DNA of 64,000 nt, from the NCBI RefSeq assembly GCF_006345805.1, contig NC_043003.1, positions 83,390,001 through 83,454,000 on the forward strand. The letters are read 5' to 3'. This DNA is from Octopus sinensis. Lineage: Eukaryota. The position numbers and the translations under genes are program-made. Shown here one piece after another: positions 3,917 through 64,000 of the stretch (its first letter is position 1; every line of letters begins with the position of its first letter). The notes under the pieces were generated by a model that was given only the letters and a program-made list of their open reading frames with translations, did not search any database and was not told the DNA's origin.

Positions 3917-5726
3917 AGCGACCGTGTCATTAAATAAAGCAGCTGCACGACTTGTAGCTACTTTTACAGGACGATATTTTTCTACAAATTCAGAAACATA
4001 CTGCCACTTCGCCAACACTGCCTTTAGAGATAGCATTCTCCGCTAAACTGTCCTCCGGGGAAGCAATCTCTTCCTCCGCATCCAAATGCTGCTGCTCCTG
4101 AAGCTGCAGGAGTTCATCAGTCGGCAGCTTCTCTGAGTGCTCCTCATCGAGACCTTAATGTCCTCATCATCAACCTCGAGGCCCATGGACTTGCCAAGAG
4201 ACACTATGTCCTCGACTACAAGTGTCTCAGACTCAAACCCCTCAAAGTTGCTTTCGGATATGCAGTCAGACCATAATTTCCTCCATACAAAATTCAGCGT
4301 TCTCTTCGTCACACCCTTCTGTATTGATGATTTTCAGACAGTTTACAATGTTGTAGTACTCCTTCAAAAACTCACGAAGGGTTAGATTTGTATTTTCGGT
4401 AACTTCAAAGCACTGACGAAACTGGTGATTAGTGTACAATTTCTTAAAATTAGAAAACACCCGTTGGTCTATGGGCTGCCAGATAGGGGTGGTGTTGCAT
4501 GAAATGTACAGAACTTTTATAAATTGAAATTCGTCCGGGATATAATCTTCGAGGTTAGGAGGGTGAACTGGAGCATTGTTGAGGATGAGGAAGATTGTTT
4601 TCCAGAAGGTACTTTTTCACTGCTGGTCCGAAGACAAGGTTGACCCACTCGGGAAAGAATTGCCTGGTGACCCAGGCTTTAACGTTTGCTCTCCACATGA
4701 CCTGCAGTTTCTCCTTCACAATTGTGTGTGACTTGAATGCTCGTGGTTTTTCTTAATGGTAGACAAGGAGTGGCTTAATCTTCAAGTCACCACTCGCATT
4801 GACACAAAGGGCGAGAGATGGCCTATCTTTCATAGACTTGTTGCCTGGCAGTTTCTTCAACTCTGCAGTTATGTAGGTTCTTCTGGGCATTTTTTACCAA
4901 AACAGGCTACTTTCATCACAGTTGAATACCTGTTGTACGATGTTCCAGGGTTCTGCTTCAGGAGATCCCCATGCAGCACTCGTGCTTTCTCGCAGATGAT
5001 GATCTCCTTAATTGTAAGCCCTGCGAATTACTTCTCGATGGTCCACAGGAGAAGCAGCTTTTCCATCCTTTCATGGATAGCTGTGCATTGCTTAGAGAGC
5101 CTGAAAACACCCATTGCTGTTGTAATGGCCTTTGATCTCCTTTTTTTCTTCGGAGTGATGCAGATCGTCGAAGTGCTTCCGTCGTATTGGCGTGCTATGT
5201 CCACTACACTCACACCTCTCACATGTTTATCAATGATTTCCTCCTTCAATTCTATCGGAATCAGCTTTTCCTTCTTCTCAGCACTGTCCTCTGCACTAAC
5301 CATCTAAGGATCCATGGCTAACACAATTATTATAAATTAATAGTAAAAATAGTAAAAATAGTAAATTAATAGTAAAAAAAAATTAATAGAAAAAAATAGT
5401 AACAAATAGTAGAAAAATATAATAAGGTTCCATGGTTAACACTAATTATTATAAATTAATAGTAATAATACAAAAAACTAAACATAAGCATTGAGAAAAA
5501 AAAATAGAGATGCTGCCACAGCGAGTTAAACATGTGAGATGAGCGAGCGGAGACTGCGCTTGTTGGGAGAGTGTGTGCTAACTCAGAGCTGACTAGCGGT
5601 CGCTTGTATGAAACTCACTCGTACTGCAGTTTTCCGCTCGCACTTCAATGTAAAAATTCACACCAACCTCGGCTCTTACAGTAAATTATCCGTACAACGG
5701 TGCACATGTACTGCGAGGTTCAACTG
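3917..5726 (-). mobile_element. Tigger/pogo-family DNA transposon remnant with frameshifted transposase and one intact TIR
   Basis: CENP-B-like HTH N-terminus (ORF 5028-5303). DDE-region motifs LNNAPVHP and NTTPIWQPIDQRVFSNFKK. C-terminal WRKLW...EDIVSLGKSMGLEVD. TA+CAGTTGAACCTCG terminus at 5726. Confidence 0.92.
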
Positions 5727-18642: not shown

Positions 18643-19645
18643 ATACATATACATATATTTATACGCTTATATGAATGTAGTATAAATATCTTGGATAGAT
18701 CTAAGTAACTGAAAAATACCAATTTAAGAACAAGGAATAACAATTTATAAGGGATGAGATTATTAATAAGTAAGGATATCAAAATAAGAAAACAAAGTAA
18801 CAAAAATTTATAGAAAATAATAAGAAATATATATATAACCTACATATAAATAGACAGGGGATTAAAATTAGAAGCAGAGTCAAGATAAAGGTAACCCGAA
18901 AAGAGGAGGTAACAGGTATGGAAGTAGTGAGGGCAGTTACAGGTATTCAAACTGAAGACGTTTTATTATTCGTAATATTACAGGTGTTATTGTATGTATG
19001 ATTTTATAGTTTCTAGGGGAAATATGATTTAGTCAAAGGCAGACTTACTTTCATAAAATCACTACCTAATATGACTAGTAGGGTAGAACATCATAGAAAG
19101 GAAAATAGCATAATCACCAAGTCAGACTAACTAGGTAGGGGTTATCATGGGTTAATATTATATATAGCATACCATATAGCACAACACATAGCGTATAACA
19201 TATGTAATGTAATATAATCCACCATATAACATAATATTTTATATTTATATTTTATACTGGAGGGTAAGTCTATAACGGATACGACACCAAAACATAATTC
19301 ACAGCATTAAAGTTTAAGTATGATAACTATACTTGTTAGTTTCGAAAATACTTAAATGTGCAGGTGATGCTGTGCATGATACCCTTAGGTCTAATCTATT
19401 ATTTATCAGGTTGTTCTTGTCTCTATACTAAAAAATCTCATAAATTTCCATAGAGCAAAGCTCACACACATATCGACTGTCTCTATAAGGCTACGTAATC
19501 CGTATTATATCCCATTCAATGCTAAATCTGGTCCCGCTATCTTTATGTTCCCAAATCTTACTAGATAAAGACGTACTATTAGCATTATGTTTGATTCTAA
19601 ATGATGAAAAATGCTTGTTAATATAGTGTTTTCATATTTATCGAT

Positions 19646-19688
<43 letters not shown>

Positions 19689-19699
19689 CAACTCATTCG

Positions 19700-20221
19700 T
19701 TGAATTTGGGTTTGGATGGTAATAATAATTGTAACACTACTAATGGGAATGGTGTTACAGGATTGGGGACCAATCTTGGATTACCCCAACCTGTTAATAA
19801 CTGTAATTTCAGAAACAGAAATAAATGTGTGTTTGGTAATCAATGCCTCAGAAAGGAGGTAGTTTACCAATGCACTGTGGATACACAATTTAGTAGTAGG
19901 GTGTATATCGGAGCAACTATGAATAGCATGAAACAGAGACTTAATTATCATAGATATACTTTTAGAAATAAAAATAGGATGTACTCTACAGGGTTAAGTG
20001 CATACATTTGGGAACTCAAAAGTGAGAACGTAGATTTTAGATTAAATTGGAAAATACTAACTTCGGCACCTGTGTATAATGGAAAAAATAAAAAATGCTC
20101 TCTATGTATTAATGAAATTTTTTTCATTATCAAAGCGGGTAGGCATATTATTAATAACATAAATGAAAAAATTTTTTTTTGCATTCACAAACTACCATAC
20201 ACTTTCTCTAGATTCAAATAG
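19700..20221 (+). CDS. GIY-YIG endonuclease of a Penelope-like element (Naiad-like CxCx5Cx5C type); 173-codon open frame, TTG start unverified
   Basis: CNFRNRNKCVFGNQCL-EVVYQCTV-VYIGAT-MKQRLNYH-STGLSAYIWELK-WKIL-CSLCINE-NNINE-CIH. Second Cys of the motif is Phe here. Confidence 0.85.
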   Translation: MNLGLDGNNNCNTTNGNGVTGLGTNLGLPQPVNNCNFRNRNKCVFGNQCLRKEVVYQCTVDTQFSSRVYIGATMNSMKQRLNYHRYTFRNKNRMYSTGLSAYIWELKSENVDFRLNWKILTSAPVYNGKNKKCSLCINEIFFIIKAGRHIINNINEKIFFCIHKLPYTFSRFK

Positions 20222-22504
20222 AACACAGCATTTCTACTAGTAATATTTTAACTCCCTTCTGTATCTAATTATACTAGTGGTCTTCTACAATTCTAAAACA
20301 TGCAACTTATAAATTTATAATTTTATATAATTTTGTAGCTACACATGTATATATAAAAAATATATATGTCCAGTATTAATTGTTTTTTGTATGTGTTTTT
20401 TTGTCTTGTTTTATAAGGGAAATACACTACGGCAAGAAATAATATATTCATTTTGGTATTTGCTTTGTAATATGTGATTCTTGAAGTTTTCTCATATTAC
20501 AGAGTGTGCATGAATATCATAGTTAGATACCTGGTTTTAGATACTGTAATACTATTATGTAATATATGAGAGTCTATTTGGGAGTTTGTTTGTTTAGGTT
20601 GAGAATTTGGGTTTTTGTAGGTTTTTATTTGGCAGGCTTGTATATTGTATATTTGGTGTATGGGTGTATCTTTGTACTCACCTAAATTTGTATCTTATGC
20701 TATTTATTAATAAACCTATTCATTTACTCACATTTGGCTTTATAAATATTAGCAGTTTTATATTTAGTCTATATTTGTAATCTGGATTTTTACACAATGT
20801 TATTCATCTTTTCATTTTTTTACTCATTATCTATAGGTATTAATTTACATAATATTAGCCTGTATACTAAGTTTATATAATTACTTTCTTCAATATATAT
20901 CTTATTTACATATATACTCTTTTATGCATATGAGGATATATGCATATTAGCATTACTATATATTAGGTGTACCTGTACCTAGGTATTTATCTGAATTTGT
21001 TTTCTATGGTATCTATCTATTCATTTAGTCATTTACTTATTTATTTATTTATTTATTTACCTATTTAAGTGTAGATATATACATACATACCAATTATTTA
21101 TTTTAATAATATATGGATACATGTATACTGGTTTGTACTTATATTATGTATGTAATTTTAATTATTTCTTCTTATTTATTTTATCACATTTTTAACTTAA
21201 GTATTTACAATTTATTAACTTATAATTAATTTAATTTCTGTTATTTACTCATATACAATTGTATTGGTAAGTCCCCCATTGATATTATTTAATGCCAAAT
21301 CTTGTTAATTATTACATTTGTTATCTATGTGTCCACGGTTGCTTAAAAGTATATTTATATATAAGTACTATGAATGTTTTCACACGAGCCACATATGAAA
21401 ATAGATGGTGCGTTTGTGTATATCTGCTGCTACACATGAGTATGTATATTTGAGTGTAATTCTATTAGTTCGTAGGTTAGGTTCTTTGATGGATAAATAT
21501 TAATATTATAATGGCACTGGATTTATTACGTAGAAAAGATATATATTTATACTATAAAAAATTAATCTATACTTTATAACTTAGCGTACATGCGATTATA
21601 GTAAATTACGGTGAAATCAGTAAACGTTATGTTGACTACAGAAAAAACGGTGTCACATGCTGCGTGTACCCTGCGAAAATAACATTCGATGTCGTGATAT
21701 ATAAATATATGTATCTTTATAACAAATATTTTATGGAAATATGTGAGTGAATCTATTTAGTTAATTTAGTGGCATGGTTATCGTTTTGAGAGGCTGGATG
21801 GCTGCATAGCTAGGATTATACCTCTTTTATTATTTATTTATTTATGTGTTTGACGTTGTTTGTGGATATGTATGTGTATGAGTGTACGAGTGTGTGTATA
21901 CATATAATTATGTATGTATGTGCGATTGATCTGTGGATGTGCGTGTGCGTATGTGTGTTTCTTGACTAACTAACCGTAAAATTTCTTTTGTGATTCAAAT
22001 TTTAAACTATAAGCCAATCGAATTAATCTAGAATAATCAATATCAAGCGGACAGAATAACCAGACTCATAGATATGTCGATGTCCGATGGATGTACTTGG
22101 TACAGACATAATTGTATCTATTATTATTATTATTATTATTATTAATATTAATAATAATTTTTATTGACTTTTACAGGTTTATAATTTTATGAACTGAACT
22201 GTGTTTTTTTATTATTTTTCATGTATAGGTCTGATTTTAATTTAAATGTGAGTGTGCATATATTTTCCTGTGTGTTAGTTTTTAGAACTATTAGCCCAAT
22301 ATGTAGAATAACTGTGTTTATTAATATATATTGATATATATTTTGTTTTATTTTGTTTTGTTCATTTTGTATTATTGTATTAATGAGTATATATATGTGT
22401 GTGTGTAGTATTATGGGTGTCTATGCACACGTTTTTATATTTTATATTTTTATATTTATATGTATATAACAAAAATTTTTTTTGACACTTATAATAAATT
22501 TAAT

Positions 22505-22615
22505 TCTCTGAAGAGGCCGTGGGGCATCCTTGTTAATGTCTCATTTATACCTGCCTTATATGGCTTATAGGTTAAATGAGGCATGCTTGCCCTTACTGCC
22601 GAAACAGCTGTCAGA
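22505..22615 (+). ncRNA. Type I hammerhead ribozyme motif with 86-nt stem II and palindromic stem III
   Basis: UCU CUGAAGA GGC...GCC GAAAC AGCU GUC^ AGA. Core is fully canonical; stem II is a long imperfect hairpin. Confidence 0.85.
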
Positions 22616-22796
22616 TATGATATAATTACATATTATATTTTATATTTTATATTTCTATTTCCTTGTCTAATTATATTTACAGTATATTTTGTATAATGCC
22701 TTTACTGTTATGTAATGGTGTAATAAAGTATTGATTGGGTATCATCTGATGGTTGATGTTTGATTGATTTAAGTATGTTTCTCCATTTTCTAATTT

Positions 22797-22833
<37 letters not shown>

Positions 22834-22974
22834 ATACCAGCTTCTGCTACAATTGTACATTTAAAACTATATTTTGGATTAAAAGAACATCGACCTAATA
22901 CCGGACAATGGCATTTAACTCTACAATTGCAACCGGAAACTTTGCTACTGTTAATATTATTGATAATCTTATCA

Positions 22975-23005
<31 letters not shown>

Positions 23006-23016
23006 GATTATTATTA

Positions 23017-23057
<41 letters not shown>

Positions 23058-23197
23058 TGTTATTATTTATACTTTCTTCATCTATAGTAAAATTTAAATC
23101 CATCTCAGCATCATCAGGTATTGCGTCAGTAACCCTTGTCCTAGTATAAACATCTAATATTATACGTACTAAATGTGTTAGTTACTAGCACATCTAA

Positions 23198-23198
<1 letters not shown>

Positions 23199-23245
<47 letters not shown>

Positions 23246-23556: not shown

Positions 23557-23611
<55 letters not shown>

Positions 23612-24470
23612 GAATGAAATACGGAAGATGGAATATGCGAGAATTTATTTATTTATCGTAACCATGTCTCTAACTTTAAGACAATCAATAAGAGACATTC
23701 AGCATCTTTGGCAGATTTTGTATGGTGACTGAAGGAGGATAAAATTGAAGTACAGCATAACTTGGTCCATAGTAAGGCCCACGAAAACCTACAATATAAT
23801 TTCCTGGAGATGCCGTCTTTGCTCCGAGGAATCCCTGTCCATTCTGTGGACTAACGAGAAGATCGTTAATAGAATTTCTGAAAGACTCTCGAGATGCCTA
23901 CACGCATATAAACGTACTGTAGCACAATGCAGTGGGAATGAACTTTGAGTAACCGTTAGCATAATTTACAGTCAGGTATGGATGCCCTAAGCTTACTTTT
24001 AACCTCTCCATTCTTACAAACGCCAAGTAGATAGTTAACTCTATTTCTGATCATGAGTGCACCAAACCTCATGTGTGTGTATGCTCACATTTTTGCTGTT
24101 GCGTGTATGAACGAGTGTACTCGTTTATGCAGCTTGCCCGTGGGCGTTTATACATCCAAAATCCTTAACTGTTATTTTTAATAGTTTTCTCGCTGTGTTG
24201 CATGTTCGTTTCTCTTCTTTTTCATCTGTGATTTTATTTTTGATCTTCCATATAAATGAAGATATTTCCTCCGTCTGGCTGTCTTTCTTTCTACAAAACG
24301 AAAAGTTACATTGGGGAACTGTTATCTTAACAGGTTGTATCTATTTATCACCCGACGAGATACATCTGCACCGCCGGATTCTCCTGAAGCGGTTGTTGAG
24401 TGTCCCACCCATGAGGGACCTATGCAAGATGTGTCGAATCAATTGTTGCGATTAATAAATTCGCATATAT
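23371..24470 (+). mobile_element. Penelope-like element C fragment (RT-thumb end, GIY-YIG split by (TA)n, degenerate hammerhead)
   Basis: [15 protein letters not shown] (thumb-end-like), LEKCLNKDVY|(TA)n|, YRNHVSNFK...SLADFVW*LKED, YSITWSIV...CRLCSEE...NRISERLSRCLH. Confidence 0.75.
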
Positions 24471-24630
24471 TCTATCTTCCGTCATTCATTGCAATATACA
24501 TAACGATCACTGTGAAAGTGACTATGCTTTACCAGTAAGCTACCAGGTAAAAAAAAATCGTTTCACTATCCATTATCTAAAATATATAAGACGAAGAAGA
24601 AGTGTGTGTGTATGCATGTGTGTGAGTGTG

Positions 24631-24662
<32 letters not shown>

Positions 24663-24847
24663 TGTGTGTTAGTGCGTGTGTGTGTGTGTGACCGACCATT
24701 AGGTTGATCCCACGTAAAATCAATATTTTTCATCCGATTTCATTCAGGCTTGGCAAATACGTTACTTATGTTCCACAGGTTTCCTACACTCTTTAGATTT
24801 TTCACTTATGGGGAAATATGGCATAATGAGGCTTCTAGAGAAACTCA

Positions 24848-47149: not shown

Positions 47150-48400
47150 CAACTGATATTTTTTATCCTGTATCTATGTAACTACCTGCTATTGGTGAAT
47201 CAGTTTAATCTCATTCAATGTGCTTCTGAATCTAGCTTCATCGTAATAAACAGTAAACATTTGTTGATTAGCAAAAAGTTTGAAAGTCAAATTGAGTTGT
47301 TCTTCATTAGACAATTGATAATATGTTTTGTTGGTTAGAATTTTAAACAATGTAAGATAAAGTTCATTTGTACTGACTGTACAAATTTGATATGGTTAAG
47401 CCATGTGTCTAAGAAATTTGCAATAGAGAAGTCGTTCATTATGGTTCATAATTTTGAAGACACATACGTTTTCCTTGGTTACTCTGTATCCTGAGTGGAA
47501 GTAATTTAGTAGTATAAGTCCATCATCATGATATAATCCTCACTCGATAAGCTGAAATTTATATTTTAGATTTGTCAATGAATATTGGCCTACAAAGATC
47601 GTTTGATTTCAACCGAGTCTGTAATCTCACATTCTCATCAAAGAGAATATTTGAATATTTGTTTTTTTAATCCAGGTTTATTTCTTGCAGTTTATGTGTA
47701 TTTTAGAAGCAAGTAAGATCATGTCTGTTTCTTCCTCAGTGGTGTTTGCATTTGATACGGCAAAGTTTAGGGCTTTGACACCCAAGATCTTCGGGATAGA
47801 TGCATAATAGTCTTTGATATCTCGTTATAAAAACTTACAGCGAGATATCAACGTTTTTGTTCGGAAGATATTTACTGTTCGTTCACTACGTGTGTGTTAT
47901 TCCAAAGTGTCAAGTGGATGATCTCTATAGTTTAAGAATAATTTTATCAAATAAATGTTCTCTGATATTTTGGGTTGGTTAATCTAATGTAAGGCTTTTT
48001 ATTAAAACCTATTAAGTGAAGTGTGATGATTTATTTGTGGAGATTCAGTTCCAACACCTATGCATAGATCGGGAGTGTTTCTTTAGCCCTGGTTGTCAAT
48101 TTTGTTGAGGATGTTTCAATTGCTCTTTTTTATGGGTTTTATTGATAACCGACGAAAGATATCTATGATAATTTGTTTGAGTGACATGATGAGGGGTATT
48201 TGGCCTGTTCTGACTGGTTATAAGTAAGGTTTTGGTTCTCGATATCACGAATTTTCGTCTTTTAAGTCTTCTGATAATTATTACTAATATTTCAGAATCA
48301 AAAGCGAATGTGCATCACACGATACTTTTTATGAAACTATCTGTTTTCAGCATTAGGCATTCTACGTAGACATTTCAGTAGGTATGACGATATTTTTAGT
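47150..48400 (-). mobile_element. Penelope-like reverse transcriptase fossil (Naiad-like)
   Basis: RDIKDYYASI (47795-47821), KALNFA...TWIKK, GLYHDDGL (47516-47539), NFLDTWLN, IITLHLIGFNKKPYIRLTNPK. Heavily interrupted. Confidence 0.7.
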
Positions 48401-49764: not shown

Positions 49765-50520
49765 CATCTTCCATTGGACAAGCTCACACAATATTTGAAG
49801 CATTTACCAACATGGATGAAAACAAAGATTTCAGCATTAAGAGCACCTACGACACTGGATCCTTACCCGTATTTGACTTTTAAATCGGTCATTGAGAACG
49901 GTGACATCATTACCAACTTTTCCTCTGCACATCAGTGCAGTATGCATGTGCAAAGACTGTGTACTTTCAGGACGAGCTCATACGCATCTAATAAAGATAT
50001 ATCGAAACGGGATATGGAGGTCATACATGCTGCATCTGTTCCAGAAGATGCTGAAAGTCGGCCGATACCCTGCATCCATTACTAGTCGCTCTCATAGCAC
50101 CAAGTAGAAGTCTTCCAACACCTGTTAACTTGAATTGCCACGTCATTGAAAGTGACACTGCTGCTACCCGCCAGGACAACCATATCGGAAAGGTAAATAT
50201 ACAGCTTGCATTCTCAGGGCGTTCTCTACAAAAGTACCTATGAAAGGAACGGCTCCGCCCTGACAATAATCTATGTCCATTGGTCAAATGCACCATCTGC
50301 AAAGCGGATACCTGCTTTCGGACCTACGTTGTGTACCAGGTTAAATGTACCTGATGCGGTGAATATTACATAGGCATTCACACGCGCGTATTATCCATGC
50401 GAGCAAACTTTTGACAAATACAAGAACATCAACAAGGATATCGCAGTCCATACATCACATCCGTAACCTACGGTTTAAAGAAGCCATTAAGATGAAAAAC
50501 ACAAACTAGCCCTCAACAAC
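49765..50520 (+). mobile_element. Penelope-like element fragment with Neptune-like CxxC GIY-YIG endonuclease
   Basis: KCTICKADTCFRTYVVYQVKCT*CGEYYIGIHTRVLSMR at about 50286-50402. Upstream LPVFDF is RT-like. Confidence 0.7.
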
Positions 50521-56512: not shown

Positions 56513-58158
56513 TATACATATATATACATATATATATATATATATACGTAGTATATGGTGTGTGTCTGTGTGTGTGTACAGAACCATACCGAGTTGTCTA
56601 TTTTGCATGATTAAAAGAAGCCACATAATAGTTATTGTGAGTAAATTCTTGGGAAGTTGCTGCCGTGTTTCAAATAACTTTTCCACTACAAAACCTTCAA
56701 AAAAGGTTATAAAAATGGAAACATTCTTCCGATACTTCCATTATAATAAGAAGGTGTAAATATTTAAAAGAACTTTTATGTCATCCCTTAATTTTCTAAC
56801 CATTAGGTTTCTGTTTGTCCTACACTTAAAACGTAATTCCGAAAGATATATTTGTCTTTTTCTCTTTCATGCTTGGGTTTTTAAGGCAACTGCTTTTGAT
56901 AATAGTATGCCACGTCAGTAAAGAATATTATGTTTTGGTAAAAATGTTTAGAACTATTTGTCTGTCTATCAATCTATCTATTTTACACTTTGCAGTAAGT
57001 TATCTATTGAGTTACTTCAAAGGGAACTTAGATTTTCTTTTAAATATTTGCATCTTATAATTGTAGTTAGGAGTAAAGAAAGTGTTGTAATGTGGATCCT
57101 CGTACACTTGTATGATATTATCGGCACTGTAATATTCTTGTCGCCACTTTTATGTTGTTGCGGTATTCTGCGTCTTATTATTTTTGACTCGTCTGTCGCG
57201 CTATTTCTGATAGTTGCGCAAGACAATGACTTTGAAAGGTCTACCTTGACAGTAACTCGAACTCGTATATATCACGTACTGACACTGACTCCAACTGAGA
57301 ACTCGTACAACGACTCTACTACTACTGACCTTCTACAACGACTGACAGTCTGACTTTGTCACGTGGGAAGAGGAGTACCATTGCTTTTTGCTTTTTGAGA
57401 AGCAAATAATTTTATTTTACTTTATTCACCTTTCCTCCATTTAACGGCTTTTAAAATTTTTTTTCCAGCTTAATAGTTTTTCTTTTTGGCGTCTATTTGT
57501 AGTAACTCTTTTTTCTTCCTTTTTCTTTCACTTGTACGCGTGAGTTCAACCACCTGTAACGGTATTGGTACCTGGAGTGTGTCATACAGCCATTTCATAG
57601 GTTCTTCTGTTCTGGTTCATTTTCTTTGAATCGCTTCTTCAATTGGTTTGTCTTTTTGCAACACCTTTCCTGCTTCTTATTCTGTACATCCTTTTTTCTA
57701 TATACTTCGTAATTTTGCCTTCTTCCCACTACTGCTTTGCGTTTTTATACGACCTCATATACACCTTATCACCAATTTTTTTCACTTGGCAATAGCGTAC
57801 TTGTTGGGTCCGTTCTCATGCCTACAGCTGCTATTGCTTCTGCCAATGGTCTTACCAGGGTTCGCTATGCATGAACAACCTGCCTCTTCCTGTGCCTTAG
57901 GGGCGCTAACTAAGATGTTCTTAATATTGGGGCACAGCTAAACGAGACCCTAATGTTATGCCTCTTGAAAATGGGCACACACCTATAGGAGCTAGTGAAA
58001 TGCTTGTCTATTAATTTAAGGAACAGTCTACCTACGGGCGTTGTTGTGTTAAAGGAGAAGGGGGTGAAAATCAATTGGTATTTCTGCGGAGCTTCCTTCT
58101 GTTATTGTAAGGGAGAATCGCCATCAACACCAGCCTTCCCAATAGCTTCCCTAACGTC

Positions 58159-59399: not shown

Positions 59400-60506
59400 T
59401 GTGTGTTTGTGCTTGTGTGTGTGTGTGTCTGTGTATGTGTGTGTGTGTGCATGATGGTAGGGATGATTTGTCGTCATCTTTCATATCAACTGCAACAACA
59501 ATGTTGTTGTTGATGATGATGATGATGATGATTTAATTTACCACAAGGATATCTGGCGGAGAGAACATTGCAAAGACAGTTTAAAATTTATATAGGAACA
59601 AAGAAATTAAAAAAAAAACGAAAGGTGAGTTAAGATAAGATGATAATATAGTATACAAAATGCATGAACTCCTGATACAAGAACAACACCCATTGTCGGC
59701 CTCCCATAGATCTAGGATCACTTTGATTACCATTGGCATTAGCCCTCGTCCAACTGTTGTTCTCCGCTCTAAGGGCGAATGCTTAAAGTAGTTCCATTTA
59801 CTGTGGAAATTTTTGCTGCAGTCATCAACCTTTTGAAGCTGGAACAATATAAGAAGCATGTAGTCAAACATCGCGGGAAAAATTACGCCCATAACTTGAA
59901 AAACCAAATTTGTTTCTGCGAAGAAGTATTTAATAGATTCTCCGGTCATATCACATTGGAAACACCGGGTTCTCATCTGATCACCGAGTGAAGCAATGTC
60001 GAGCCTAGTTACTATTTACACGGGTCACCGCTTTGAAAACCCAGCATAACCGCAGTCTAATGACTGAAGCATGTAAAACTAAAATATAAAAGATTCGACA
60101 TTCACCACAGATAGTTCATTCACAAAGCAGAATCAAATAAGACAAAAATTAGTAATCAATGTGACGGAACAGAATTTGAAATTATATGCTGTAAACTACA
60201 TCAACTGAAACAAGAACTTACAGTTGATGTAATGTTCGCTAAAAATAAACCATGAATCAACGAAAACAGTTCAAGTTCTGTAAGCGACAGAAAAATTATA
60301 TGAAAGTTTGTGAAAGAAAGAAAGAAACTATATGAATGTAAGAGCTGAAGCAAGGTTGCAATAAACATGTCGAATAAAGTAATAGAATGACAGTGAGAAA
60401 GATCCTTAAAGAAAGTGCCATACAAAACATCCTAGAGCATATTTTTTTATAACGAAATATTAACTCAAAAACCTCACATTTTTAAGTCCTTTTTCACACT
60501 GTATAT

Positions 60507-61964: not shown

Positions 61965-64000
61965 TCATAGCCTGAAAGATATTTCATCATCCAGGGAGCA
62001 AGAACGGCTCAGTGTGCTGCCCAGGTAGACAAACTTGTCTACGACTTTCAGAATTGTTCCTTCAACCAAGATAGCTGGTTCCACATATGGACTTCCTGAT
62101 GCTGGGTCGAACATTACAATAGTCTTCTCCAGACTAATTCTGAGTCCAAATGCCTTGCAAAAAGCAGAAATACGATTCATATGTATTTGCATGTCATCCA
62201 CTGTAGAGTGACTAAGTCACAGTCATCTGCATAAAGGAGGTCACAAATAAGAGACTGGAAAACTTTTGAATTGGCAGCAAATCGGCGCAGATTAAAGAAG
62301 CGGTCAGAAGATCGATACCTGACATATATTTCCAGAGAACTAACCTTAGCAAAAGCATGAGTAGAAGCAGCAGCAAAGTACACAGAAACGAGAGTTGAGG
62401 CAAGGATGTCAACCTTCTTGACACCATTCTCTATAGGAATGAGTCCCGCTATGCCACCACCAACATTGATCTAAGCCTCCATCCCATCATGAAATGATTT
62501 AAGTATAGATACAAAGTGGTCCGGACATCCAAGTTTTGCAAGTATTTTCCATAGCAAGTCTCTCTTCACAGTATCAAAGGCCTTGGTTAAAAAATGAATG
62601 CCTGGACGTGATCCATATTCTTCTCATAGCACTTCTCCTGCAACTGTCTTGCTGTAAAAGCCGTTATCCATTGTTCCTCTACCAGATCGGAAGCCATATT
62701 GCGATTCAGATAGGATATCATTTACGAGATACCCATTCAGGCTAGTAAGGAGATTTGCCAGCAGCTGGTGGTAAAGCAATACTTCTATATTTACCACACA
62801 TTGTTCTGGCTCCTTTTTCTTTATAGAGAGGGAGAATAATTGCATCCTTCCAGTTTTTAGGCATTGCACCATCCCTTCTGACTGCACTAATAAGTTCATG
62901 ATGGGACTGTATGATGTAATCACCACCAAATCGCAAAACCTCAGCACAAATTCCATCCTTTCCAGGTTCCCTACCAAGATTCAATTTATTTATTGATGTC
63001 ATCACTTCATCTATCGAGGGCGTGGAATTTAAGGAACCAATGATAGGTCTTTGTTGCATAGTATCAATCACTGTTTCATCCCTACTGACTCATGGTTTAA
63101 GAGTTCAGAGAAGTGTTCGATCCAGCGACCTGCGATTTCTGTTGATTTAGTAAATAGAGTGGAAGACTCCTTGGAAAACAAAGGAGCTGATGTGGAGCTC
63201 TTACACCCATAAACTTGCTTCATAAGATGGTAGAGCTTCTTGCTGTCATTTGCATCAGCAACAGCCTGAACATCTCGAGCAAGATCCTCCCACCAAGTGT
63301 TCTGCATCTTCTTTAGAGATCGCTGCAGTAGTGATTTTACACTGCTATAGTGGGCAAGTGCTAGATTTCTCAACACAGCTGAAAGTCCTCTGTGCAGCAA
63401 TACATTGTGGGCATGGTGCTTTACAGCCAATAGGCACCGAACTTCAGCATCATTTTCATCATATCAGTCTCTGTGTCTGGCAGTAGCATATCCCACTGTT
63501 TCAGCAACACATTGAAGAACCTGATCTCGAAAATCTTCGCATGTTGCAGTATTTTCAGTGCTGGACAAACGAGTGTGAAGCTCTTTCCTCAACACAGCAT
63601 TATTTATCTTATGGTCATTCAGACCCCGGGGAATGCTGAATGGCCCTCTCCTCTCTTTCACTGTAATCAACATTCGGAAGTTTGCTCGCACCAGACTCCG
63701 GTCTGTCCAGCATTCCGATCCATGAAAGGACTTGACGTTACAAATGTCATAGATGTCACGCTTGCGGATGATGACATAATCCAGCAAGTGCCAAACTTTA
63801 GACCTTGGTTGCATCCACGTTGTTGTGTGATCACCTTTGTACATAAAATGAGTGCTTGCGATGTAAATTCCATGTTCATCGCAAAGCTCCAGCAGCATCA
63901 GACCATTGCTATTCATTTTCCCTACAACAAAACGTCCTAGAGAGTTCCGTGTTTGCCAGTCTGCTCCAATCCTGACATTGAAATCCCCCAGTAGAATGAT
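61965..64000 (-). mobile_element. RTE-clade LINE pseudogene (APE endonuclease C-terminus plus RT), running off the window end
   Basis: NSNGLMLLELC...TTWMQPRSKVWHLLDYVII; PGKDGICAEVL...WKDAIILPLYKEKG; SESQYGFRSGRGTMD; LTKAFDTV; LLYADD (62222-62233). Multiple frameshifts. Confidence 0.93.

Follow-up and report, generated by a model that had tools for sequence, protein, structure and literature searches.

A split GIY-YIG endonuclease in a nest of Hydra-clade Penelope remnants of Octopus sinensis: probable TA-directed insertion at the YIG codons

In a 64,000-nucleotide (nt) stretch of Octopus sinensis contig NC_043003.1 (assembly GCF_006345805.1, positions 83,390,001 to 83,454,000 of the forward strand; hereafter the window), two pieces of a GIY-YIG endonuclease (EN) of the kind carried by Penelope-like elements (PLEs) lie on the minus strand some 3.1 kb apart, and the break between them falls at the codons of the catalytic YIG motif. 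The locus raises the question of whether the two pieces were once a single copy, what came to separate them, and whether the catalytic codons themselves, which can spell TATATA, are a target of elements that insert at TA repeats. Three EN-bearing copies of divergent families are involved, all within 4.7 kb (19.3–23.9 kb): A, the split copy; B, on the plus strand between the halves of A; and C, on the plus strand to the right of A. The favored reading, to which a probability of roughly 0.7 is assigned, is that the locus is a nest of dead PLE copies of the Hydra clade in which A was split at YIG by a 3.1-kb TA-directed insert that begins with B.

The N-terminal part of A (22831–23200, minus strand; 5′-truncated end near 23200) covers EN positions 4–45, from CNCRVKCHCPVLGRC to AGIF-IY, and contains an Asn-rich (AAT)n linker at 22951–23067, listed as (TTA)38 by Tandem Repeats Finder (TRF). 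The C-half (19326–19649, minus strand) is matched by tblastn with 170 relatives over 19326–19637, and its short 3′ end reaches ~19260. Each half abuts a pure TA tract: (TA)18 at 19650–19685 (36 nt) lies between the C-half and the 5′-truncated end of B, and (TA)16 at 22799–22830 (32 nt) lies between the insert and the N-half. Read on the minus strand, the sequence to the right of the second tract (...CNCRVKCHCPVLGRCSFNPKYSFKCTIVAEAGIF / ...SSKVSGCNCRVKCHCPVLGRCSFNPKYSFKCTIVAEAGIF) enters (TA)16 directly as IYIY...; on leaving the left tract the strand reads tat ata tga tga tcg... (YI, two stops, SINMK), then KHYINKHFSSFRIKHNANSTSLSSKIWE..., and past the SINMK segment, after a 1-nt frame slip, A reads on as KHYINKHFSSFRIKHNANSTSLSSKIWEHKDSGTRFSIEWDIIRIT, a stop, PYRDSRYVCELCSMEIYEIF and a further stop. 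This is the arrangement that the original prediction had described, an N-half running into (TA)16 and a C-half resuming from the left tract, and its proposal that the halves form one GIY-YIG domain is borne out by excision and alignment. An EN profile of 150 positions was built from 121 relatives and B, with Y and I of YIG at positions 44–45; in hidden Markov model (HMM) searches with it the N-half of A corresponds to positions 4–45 at 22949–22821 (independent E-value 0.003 alone) and the C-half, on the same strand, to positions 52–142 at 19634–19359 (independent E-value 1e-21). When the halves were joined in silico (19650–22830 cut out, 7 nt of TA retained; 777 nt), a single domain was obtained that spans positions 4–143 over 140 residues, with a score of 87.9 bits (E 3e-29), to which the C-half alone gives ~73 bits and the N-half adds ~14 bits. 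By hand count, the colinear halves lack no more than about one codon, close to the G of YIG, and BLASTP of joined A against B returns one colinear alignment across the junction with 30% identity over 125 residues. Alignment of A and B at the DNA level was dropped, since they are too diverged for it to inform, and the protein profile was used instead.

An alternative is that the halves are unrelated, in which case the C-half would be an independent 5′-truncated copy joined by TA microhomology and the N-half would come from another copy, or the junction would be an assembly error. In this family 5′-truncated copies that begin at a TA tract are usual (B, C, and the relatives' loci L002 and L008), and no family-A relative was found to confirm that the halves belong together; against this, the halves share a strand, come together to within a codon and score jointly above either part, and tracts of 32–36 nt are shorter than ordinary sequencing reads, which speaks against misassembly. 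The chance that independent fragments would meet within one codon on the same strand is ~2%, and target-primed reverse transcription (TPRT) is not expected to yield 3′-truncated pieces such as the N-half of A; these two points together argue that the split is real and leave unrelated halves as an extremely improbable explanation. A is thus one copy split at the Tyr-Ile codons of YIG. Truncated at its 5′ side, it retains linker, EN domain and 3′ end but no reverse transcriptase (RT), and its 140-residue domain holds three in-frame stops. Within the clade that they share, A and B are only distantly related.

B (19686–20221, plus strand) is a 5′-truncated element, of the Hydra clade as argued below, that consists of an Asn-rich linker, a Zn-knuckle and a complete GIY-YIG EN, with its stop codon at 20219–20221. 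Its presence on the plus strand, opposite to A, agrees with the original prediction: the EN matches profile positions 5–149 at 19787–20218 (E 2e-48), and the frame is stop-free for 199 codons (19622–20218) in DNA of 31% GC. The 199 stop-free codons, set against three stops in the domain of A, fit a younger age for B. The frame has no ATG and emerges from the left TA tract, and since EN is C-terminal in this family, B is read as a 5′-truncated copy whose open reading frame (ORF) ends at EN. Its closest relatives, at 61–64% identity, are Octopus bimaculoides A0A0L8FU15 and the UniParc/MetaClust entry P0002. An AlphaFold2 model of the B EN, computed with 40 relatives, has a predicted local distance difference test (pLDDT) score of 94.8. 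Foldseek ranks T4 EndoII and I-TevI first in the PDB (probability 0.72; target-based template modeling score of at most 0.64) and places Hpy188I and UvrC lower; the E-values are all weak (0.2–0.5), and a GIY-YIG fold is plausible for the modeled domain. Downstream of the stop, a probable 3′ untranslated region (UTR) would run from 20222 to ~20306–20345, and a TA-rich remnant (TTATAAAT repeats, TATATATAAAAAATATATAT) occupies 20307–20372, 89–154 bp past the stop. Relatives reach their flanking (TA)n within a short span of the stop codon, namely 63 bp (L002), 104 bp (L007, where (TA)n follows the 3′ UTR), 189 bp (L001), and 243 bp (L008); from these short distances and the TA remnant, B proper most likely ends near 20300–20345.

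The proposal that B fills the interval between the tracts (19685–22798) is therefore not supported: its ORF stops at 20219–20221, and 2.4 kb follow without RT, repeats or ribozyme. This remainder of the insert (20373–22798, assigned to neither strand, ~26% GC) is non-coding DNA. Neither of its strands resembles RT or EN (tblastn with 176 proteins; full-length profile), and the segment has no ORF of at least 100 amino acids and no copy elsewhere in the window. Terminal inverted repeats were not found for the insert, nor was any Rfam or hammerhead ribozyme match within it, and a search of 20220–22798 for tRNA and SINE (short interspersed element) signals found none. It may stem from another insertion at the tract that took up B, from 3′ flanking DNA that traveled with B, or from rearrangement of one TA tract with another.

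For the second of these, 3′ transduction, a read-through transcript of the source copy of B would have carried 20373–22798, the 3.1 kb would be one unit, and 20307–20372 would be the 3′ flank of the source. The internal TA remnant does lie where B is expected to end, the rest of the insert resembles unique DNA, and the outer tracts, at 36 and 32 nt, differ little in size, as if one tract had been duplicated, a pattern seen also at L002, a 0.5-kb stub between (TA)12 and (TA)13 (23 and 25 nt) in the center of a palindromic flank. However, near-equal flanks were rejected as a general sign of whole-tract duplication on the evidence of L008, where the flanking TA tracts are 58 and 35 nt long, and microsatellite lengths change too fast for the argument from equality. 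To our knowledge transduction by a PLE has not been reported, which also counts against this origin, and it is considered unlikely. As to rearrangement, since (TA)n reads alike on both strands, each tract can recombine with any other, whichever way round they lie, and recombination or repair between TA tracts might have moved or inverted into A a 3.1-kb segment that already held B. Such an event would account for 2.4 kb that bears no likeness to a transposon and has one copy in the window, it would find TA tracts about once per kb, and it would leave both junctions in pure TA, as observed; yet it needs two exchanges in TA tracts, the window holds no matching breakpoints or reciprocal products, and a 5′-truncated end of B at a TA tract is what TPRT into (TA)n gives (L002, L008). 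Rearrangement is accordingly rated as quite unlikely, and TA-directed insertion of a segment beginning with B remains the preferred account of the split.

Assignment of A and B to a PLE clade relies on motifs and on relatives, since Pfam gave no match for either copy; PF01541 (GIY-YIG) was matched in 7 of 41 relatives (E 1e-4), not in B. An exhaustive HMMER search with B returned 4,118 related representatives, most of them stubs of 160–250 amino acids, and relatives also come from Argonauta hians, Holothuria leucospilota (in a later profile search) and many marine metagenome contigs. Relatives of 628–765 amino acids carry EN C-terminally and have ahead of it an RT-like part (FDVxxFYPSI, YRDDG, FLDV...PYxKPN...SNHP), with a conserved linker (IWYNPPY...KLSYSC) between the two; in P0002, the closest relative, the pre-EN linker module precedes EN. 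RVT_1 matched weakly (E 0.019) in the A. hians protein P0147, and a profile of full-length relatives found no RT match among PDB sequences because the Hydra RT is too divergent. Features of the N-terminal part are available from full-length relatives only: SADKT occurs in P0146, P0167 and the Argonauta locus L001, QADKT occurs in P0036, and an RW motif near the N-terminus reads RLRWRAW, RIRWRAI or KIRWMVW. The DKT and RW region is missing from B and A, both truncated.

The EN itself is more informative. The ORF of B stops right after EN, which places the domain at the C-terminus, and neither B nor A has an RT, as both are truncated. The stretch from the GIY Tyr to YIG (consensus VVYQATVTTEEEEKTYIG; B VVYQCTVDTQFSSRVYIG; A YSFKCTIVAEAGIF-IY) contains no pair of Cys residues in B, in A or in the 122-sequence profile alignment, so CCHH is absent. 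The CxCX5C linker has the consensus CNCRKKEECPLEGKC and reads CNCRVKCHCPVLGRC in A and CNFRNRNKCVFGNQC in B, a CNF variant in which the second Cys is lost. A CxxC precedes the catalytic E (KCSLCINE in B, VCELCSME in A), the CxH after the conserved N is kept in B (FFCIHK) and decayed in A, and profile columns C105, C108, E111, N124, C133, and H135 are nearly invariant. Hydra-clade PLEs are short, with a C-terminal EN, a CxCX5C linker, CxxC and CxH motifs, and no CCHH; they have DKG changed to DKT and an RWK motif, and nearly all Hydra families insert into (TA)n (Craig, Yushenova, Rodriguez and Arkhipova, 2021, Mol Biol Evol, PMC8557442). By these motifs A and B fit the Hydra clade, which narrows the predicted identity of the pieces as PLE endonuclease remnants. 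Canonical PLEs with a C-terminal EN (Penelope/Poseidon, Neptune, Nematis) were rejected as a candidate, since they need CCHH in the GIY-YIG core, which is absent here.

The surroundings offer such elements many targets. The window is AT-rich eukaryotic DNA (26–43% GC across 2-kb windows) dense in microsatellites, and its 65 pure TA tracts of at least 12 nt, which total 1,530 nt or 2.4% of the 64 kb (~1 per kb), make target sites for TA-directed elements abundant. TA tracts adjoin the 5′-truncated ends of A, B, and C. For A, the outer flank at that end is (TA)15 at 23201–23231, followed by (CATA)n to 23369, which is consistent with A itself having inserted into a TA tract; a degenerate TA-rich stretch (~19130–19256) adjoins its 3′ end.

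Why, then, did the break fall at the YIG codons? Joined A has one run of at least three TA units in its 777 nt, and this run is the junction, so a TA-directed event in A had to land there and the YIG location is uninformative beyond the TA preference. Full-length ORFs of relatives hold zero to two (TA)3 runs in 2.1–2.4 kb. The flanks, at 32–36 nt and not 6 nt, suggest a microsatellite as the target, and the simpler reading is that a TA microsatellite was already at the site upon insertion; insertion into TATATA with later expansion of the tract on both sides could have left the same flanks. The original prediction had taken B to target the TATATA of the Tyr-Ile codons directly, so that TA-targeting PLEs would, as a systematic property, tend to knock out the active site in related elements, with self-limitation or competition as the outcome. 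The break does lie at the YI codons, the family does target TA repeats, and C has (TA)23 at or inside its GIY-YIG core. Of that proposal, TA-directed insertion stands as the likely cause of the split, and direct recognition of a 6-nt TATATA does not, given flanks of pure (TA)n microsatellite and a site that is the only TA run in A. In seven intact or near-intact relatives the YIG codons are TAC TTA, TAC ATA, TAT GTT, TAC TAT, TAC ATC (twice), and, in B, TAT ATC; none of the seven has TATATA. The Tyr codon is TAT in two and TAC in five, as in the background of these ORFs (44 TAT to 59 TAC), and a test for codon avoidance at YIG gave no signal in these seven relatives. The YIG site is therefore neither a built-in target nor visibly avoided. 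Further, A is no competitor, since it lacks the RT and the 5′ end, and its disruption costs no active element. With a single clear case, direct targeting of TATATA by the B EN and a self-limiting role are very unlikely.

The favored history would begin with insertion of A (minus strand, 23200 to ~19260), already 5′-truncated, into a (TA)n tract. The TAT-ATA of its YIG Tyr-Ile codons, the only TA run in A, would then have grown by slippage into (TA)n, and a TA-directed 3.1-kb insertion into that tract, with the younger, 5′-truncated B on the plus strand as its left end, would have left 36 and 32 nt of (TA)n on either side and the halves of A still colinear. In the mechanism suggested by published work on the family, the GIY-YIG nuclease with its CxCX5C linker would nick (TA)n, and the element RNA would be reverse-transcribed from the nick by TPRT; 5′ truncation would be frequent, and the target tract would be present on both sides of the new copy.

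Several points weigh against this history. Only 19686 to ~20345 (~0.65 kb) of the 3.1-kb insert is attributable to B, and a B insertion alone may not account for the whole; one locus does not tell tract growth ahead of the insertion from growth that followed it; the protein database search gave no match to an uninterrupted family-A protein; and no hammerhead ribozyme, a hallmark of the Hydra clade expected in the pseudo-LTR or 3′ region, was found in the window, either by Rfam (at gathering score or E ≤ 5) or by motif scan. The ribozyme could simply have been lost in truncated copies. Moreover, a motif scan finds canonical CUGAUGA...GAAAC cores in or beside the relatives' loci L002 (four tandem units) and L008, for which Rfam cmscan (E ≤ 1) lists no hammerhead, so a negative Rfam result is weak evidence against PLE-type ribozymes.

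Copy C bears on a broader claim. It is a decayed Hydra-clade EN (profile ~46–147) at 23609–23936 on the plus strand, right after (TA)23 at 23562–23608, with one frameshift and several stops, and is detected as HMM segments at positions 56–89 and 82–147. Just upstream of (TA)23, nine codons reading EKCLNKDVY resemble the conserved KCLTKSVVY of the GIY motif; by this resemblance they may be the GIY motif of C, with the tract replacing the GIY-YIG spacer, or C may be an ordinary 5′-truncated copy instead. When the upstream segment is joined to C, positions 21–90 are covered at 25.7 bits, against a mean of 23.1 for shuffles, 2 of 200 of which reach 25.7. A TA tract in the EN core is thus clear in A and possible in C. 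One could propose from this that the Tyr codons of GIY and YIG (GTx-TAT-A.., TAT-ATx) are recurrent seeds or microhomology points for (TA)n, and that the catalytic core would then be a preferred site of TA microsatellites, 5′ truncation and further TA-directed insertions in Hydra-clade copies. Among predicted proteins that read through TA, four contain such tracts, five altogether; each of these lies at the end of a copy, away from YIG, in a sample biased to intact domains. The proposal is improbable as it stands; if true, it would describe a family-wide structural weak point arising from the element's own target preference.

Other remnants lie elsewhere in the window. An RT piece (47483–47905, minus strand; full-length profile positions 57–195, E 3e-20) and a pre-EN linker piece (57919–58086, minus strand; positions 319–376, E 8e-11), both of Hydra-clade type, point to a family that is dense in the genome. 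A fourth EN-bearing copy at 24218–24770 (minus strand) was rejected: its matches have independent E-values of 0.45 and 0.04, are split by (TG)n and lack the downstream motifs. These weak EN-profile matches are in the right order and would be tail-to-tail with C. At 50280–50408 (plus strand), a weak match (...CFRTYVVYQVKCT, a stop, then CGEYYIGIHTR) has a Cys pair between GIY and YIG and seems to be left over from a canonical CCHH-type PLE endonuclease, of a different clade. A full-length 5S rRNA match (59938–60058, plus strand; 54.9 bits, above the Rfam gathering score) may be a gene or a 5S-derived repeat. By eye, LINE-like (long interspersed element) frames at 62627–64000 (minus strand), an apurinic/apyrimidinic (AP)-endonuclease-like IILLGDFNVRIGADW... 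and the start of an RT, run out of the window end, and a 116-amino-acid frame at 4269–4616 (minus strand; ...LNNAPVHPP...NTTPIWQPIDQRVF...) resembles the DDE region of a pogo/Tigger-type transposase.

Among the relatives' loci, L001 (5487–7887; A. hians, GCA_054771915.1) holds an apparently full-length Hydra-clade element with RW and DKT and an intact 628-amino-acid frame of RT plus EN, so recent activity of the clade in octopods is possible. L006 joins an EN end to a full ORF in a partial tandem. In L002 (994–1900 and 1990–2790), a metagenome contig, a long inverted repeat has the stub in its central (TA)n, and four tandem 279-bp units lie just upstream of the stub; each unit holds a canonical hammerhead core, CTGATGA-GCTGTTGTACAGC-GAAAC, and the array is retrozyme-like in look.

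Among known systems, Naiad was the first guess, prompted by a seemingly stand-alone EN ORF, TA targeting and cephalopod remnants. Naiad PLEs carry EN at the N-terminus, ahead of a CxC domain and the RT, keep CCHH, and are known as old remnants in cephalopods (PMC8557442). The copies described here share with them a GIY-YIG EN, an upstream Zn-finger-like linker and a preference for (TA)n, but the assignment fails on domain order and CCHH: a stop follows directly after the B EN, no RT lies downstream on either strand, and the RT-like part is upstream in the closest relatives. With the Hydra clade, by contrast, they share a C-terminal GIY-YIG EN in a single ORF without CCHH, the CxCX5C linker, insertion into (TA)n and frequent 5′ truncation, and the relatives found here, from Octopus, Argonauta, and Holothuria, accord with reported hosts that include Mollusca and Echinodermata (PMC8557442). 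Differences from the published description are that a break at another copy's YIG codons is not described there (PMC8557442), that the copies in the window are EN-bearing stubs without a hammerhead ribozyme, that the linker of B is CNF, and that octopod copies have long Asn-rich (AAT)n linkers.

The locus thus adds cephalopod-type examples to a recently defined clade, and it illustrates how nested clusters are built by a microsatellite-targeting retroelement, here as three copies, each at a TA tract. It is also useful for repeat annotation in AT-rich, microsatellite-dense genomes, where EN stubs are easily missed and Pfam is silent on copies such as B and A. With the TA preference on record and nesting to be expected, the locus points to no new mechanism; a single nested insertion into a dead copy is an ordinary outcome of the known (TA)n preference and not evidence of regulation or competition. 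Should the catalytic core be a hotspot genome-wide, it would be a modest case of target preference shaping the decay of an element's own copies. Target-specific retroelements are known to nest in earlier copies, as when L1 or Alu inserts into A-rich tails. The likeness lies in the re-use of a target motif carried or created by earlier insertions, which gives rise to clusters of mutually interrupting copies; the difference is that the motif here is (TA)n inside coding sequence, at codons that spell TATATA, and not a tail.

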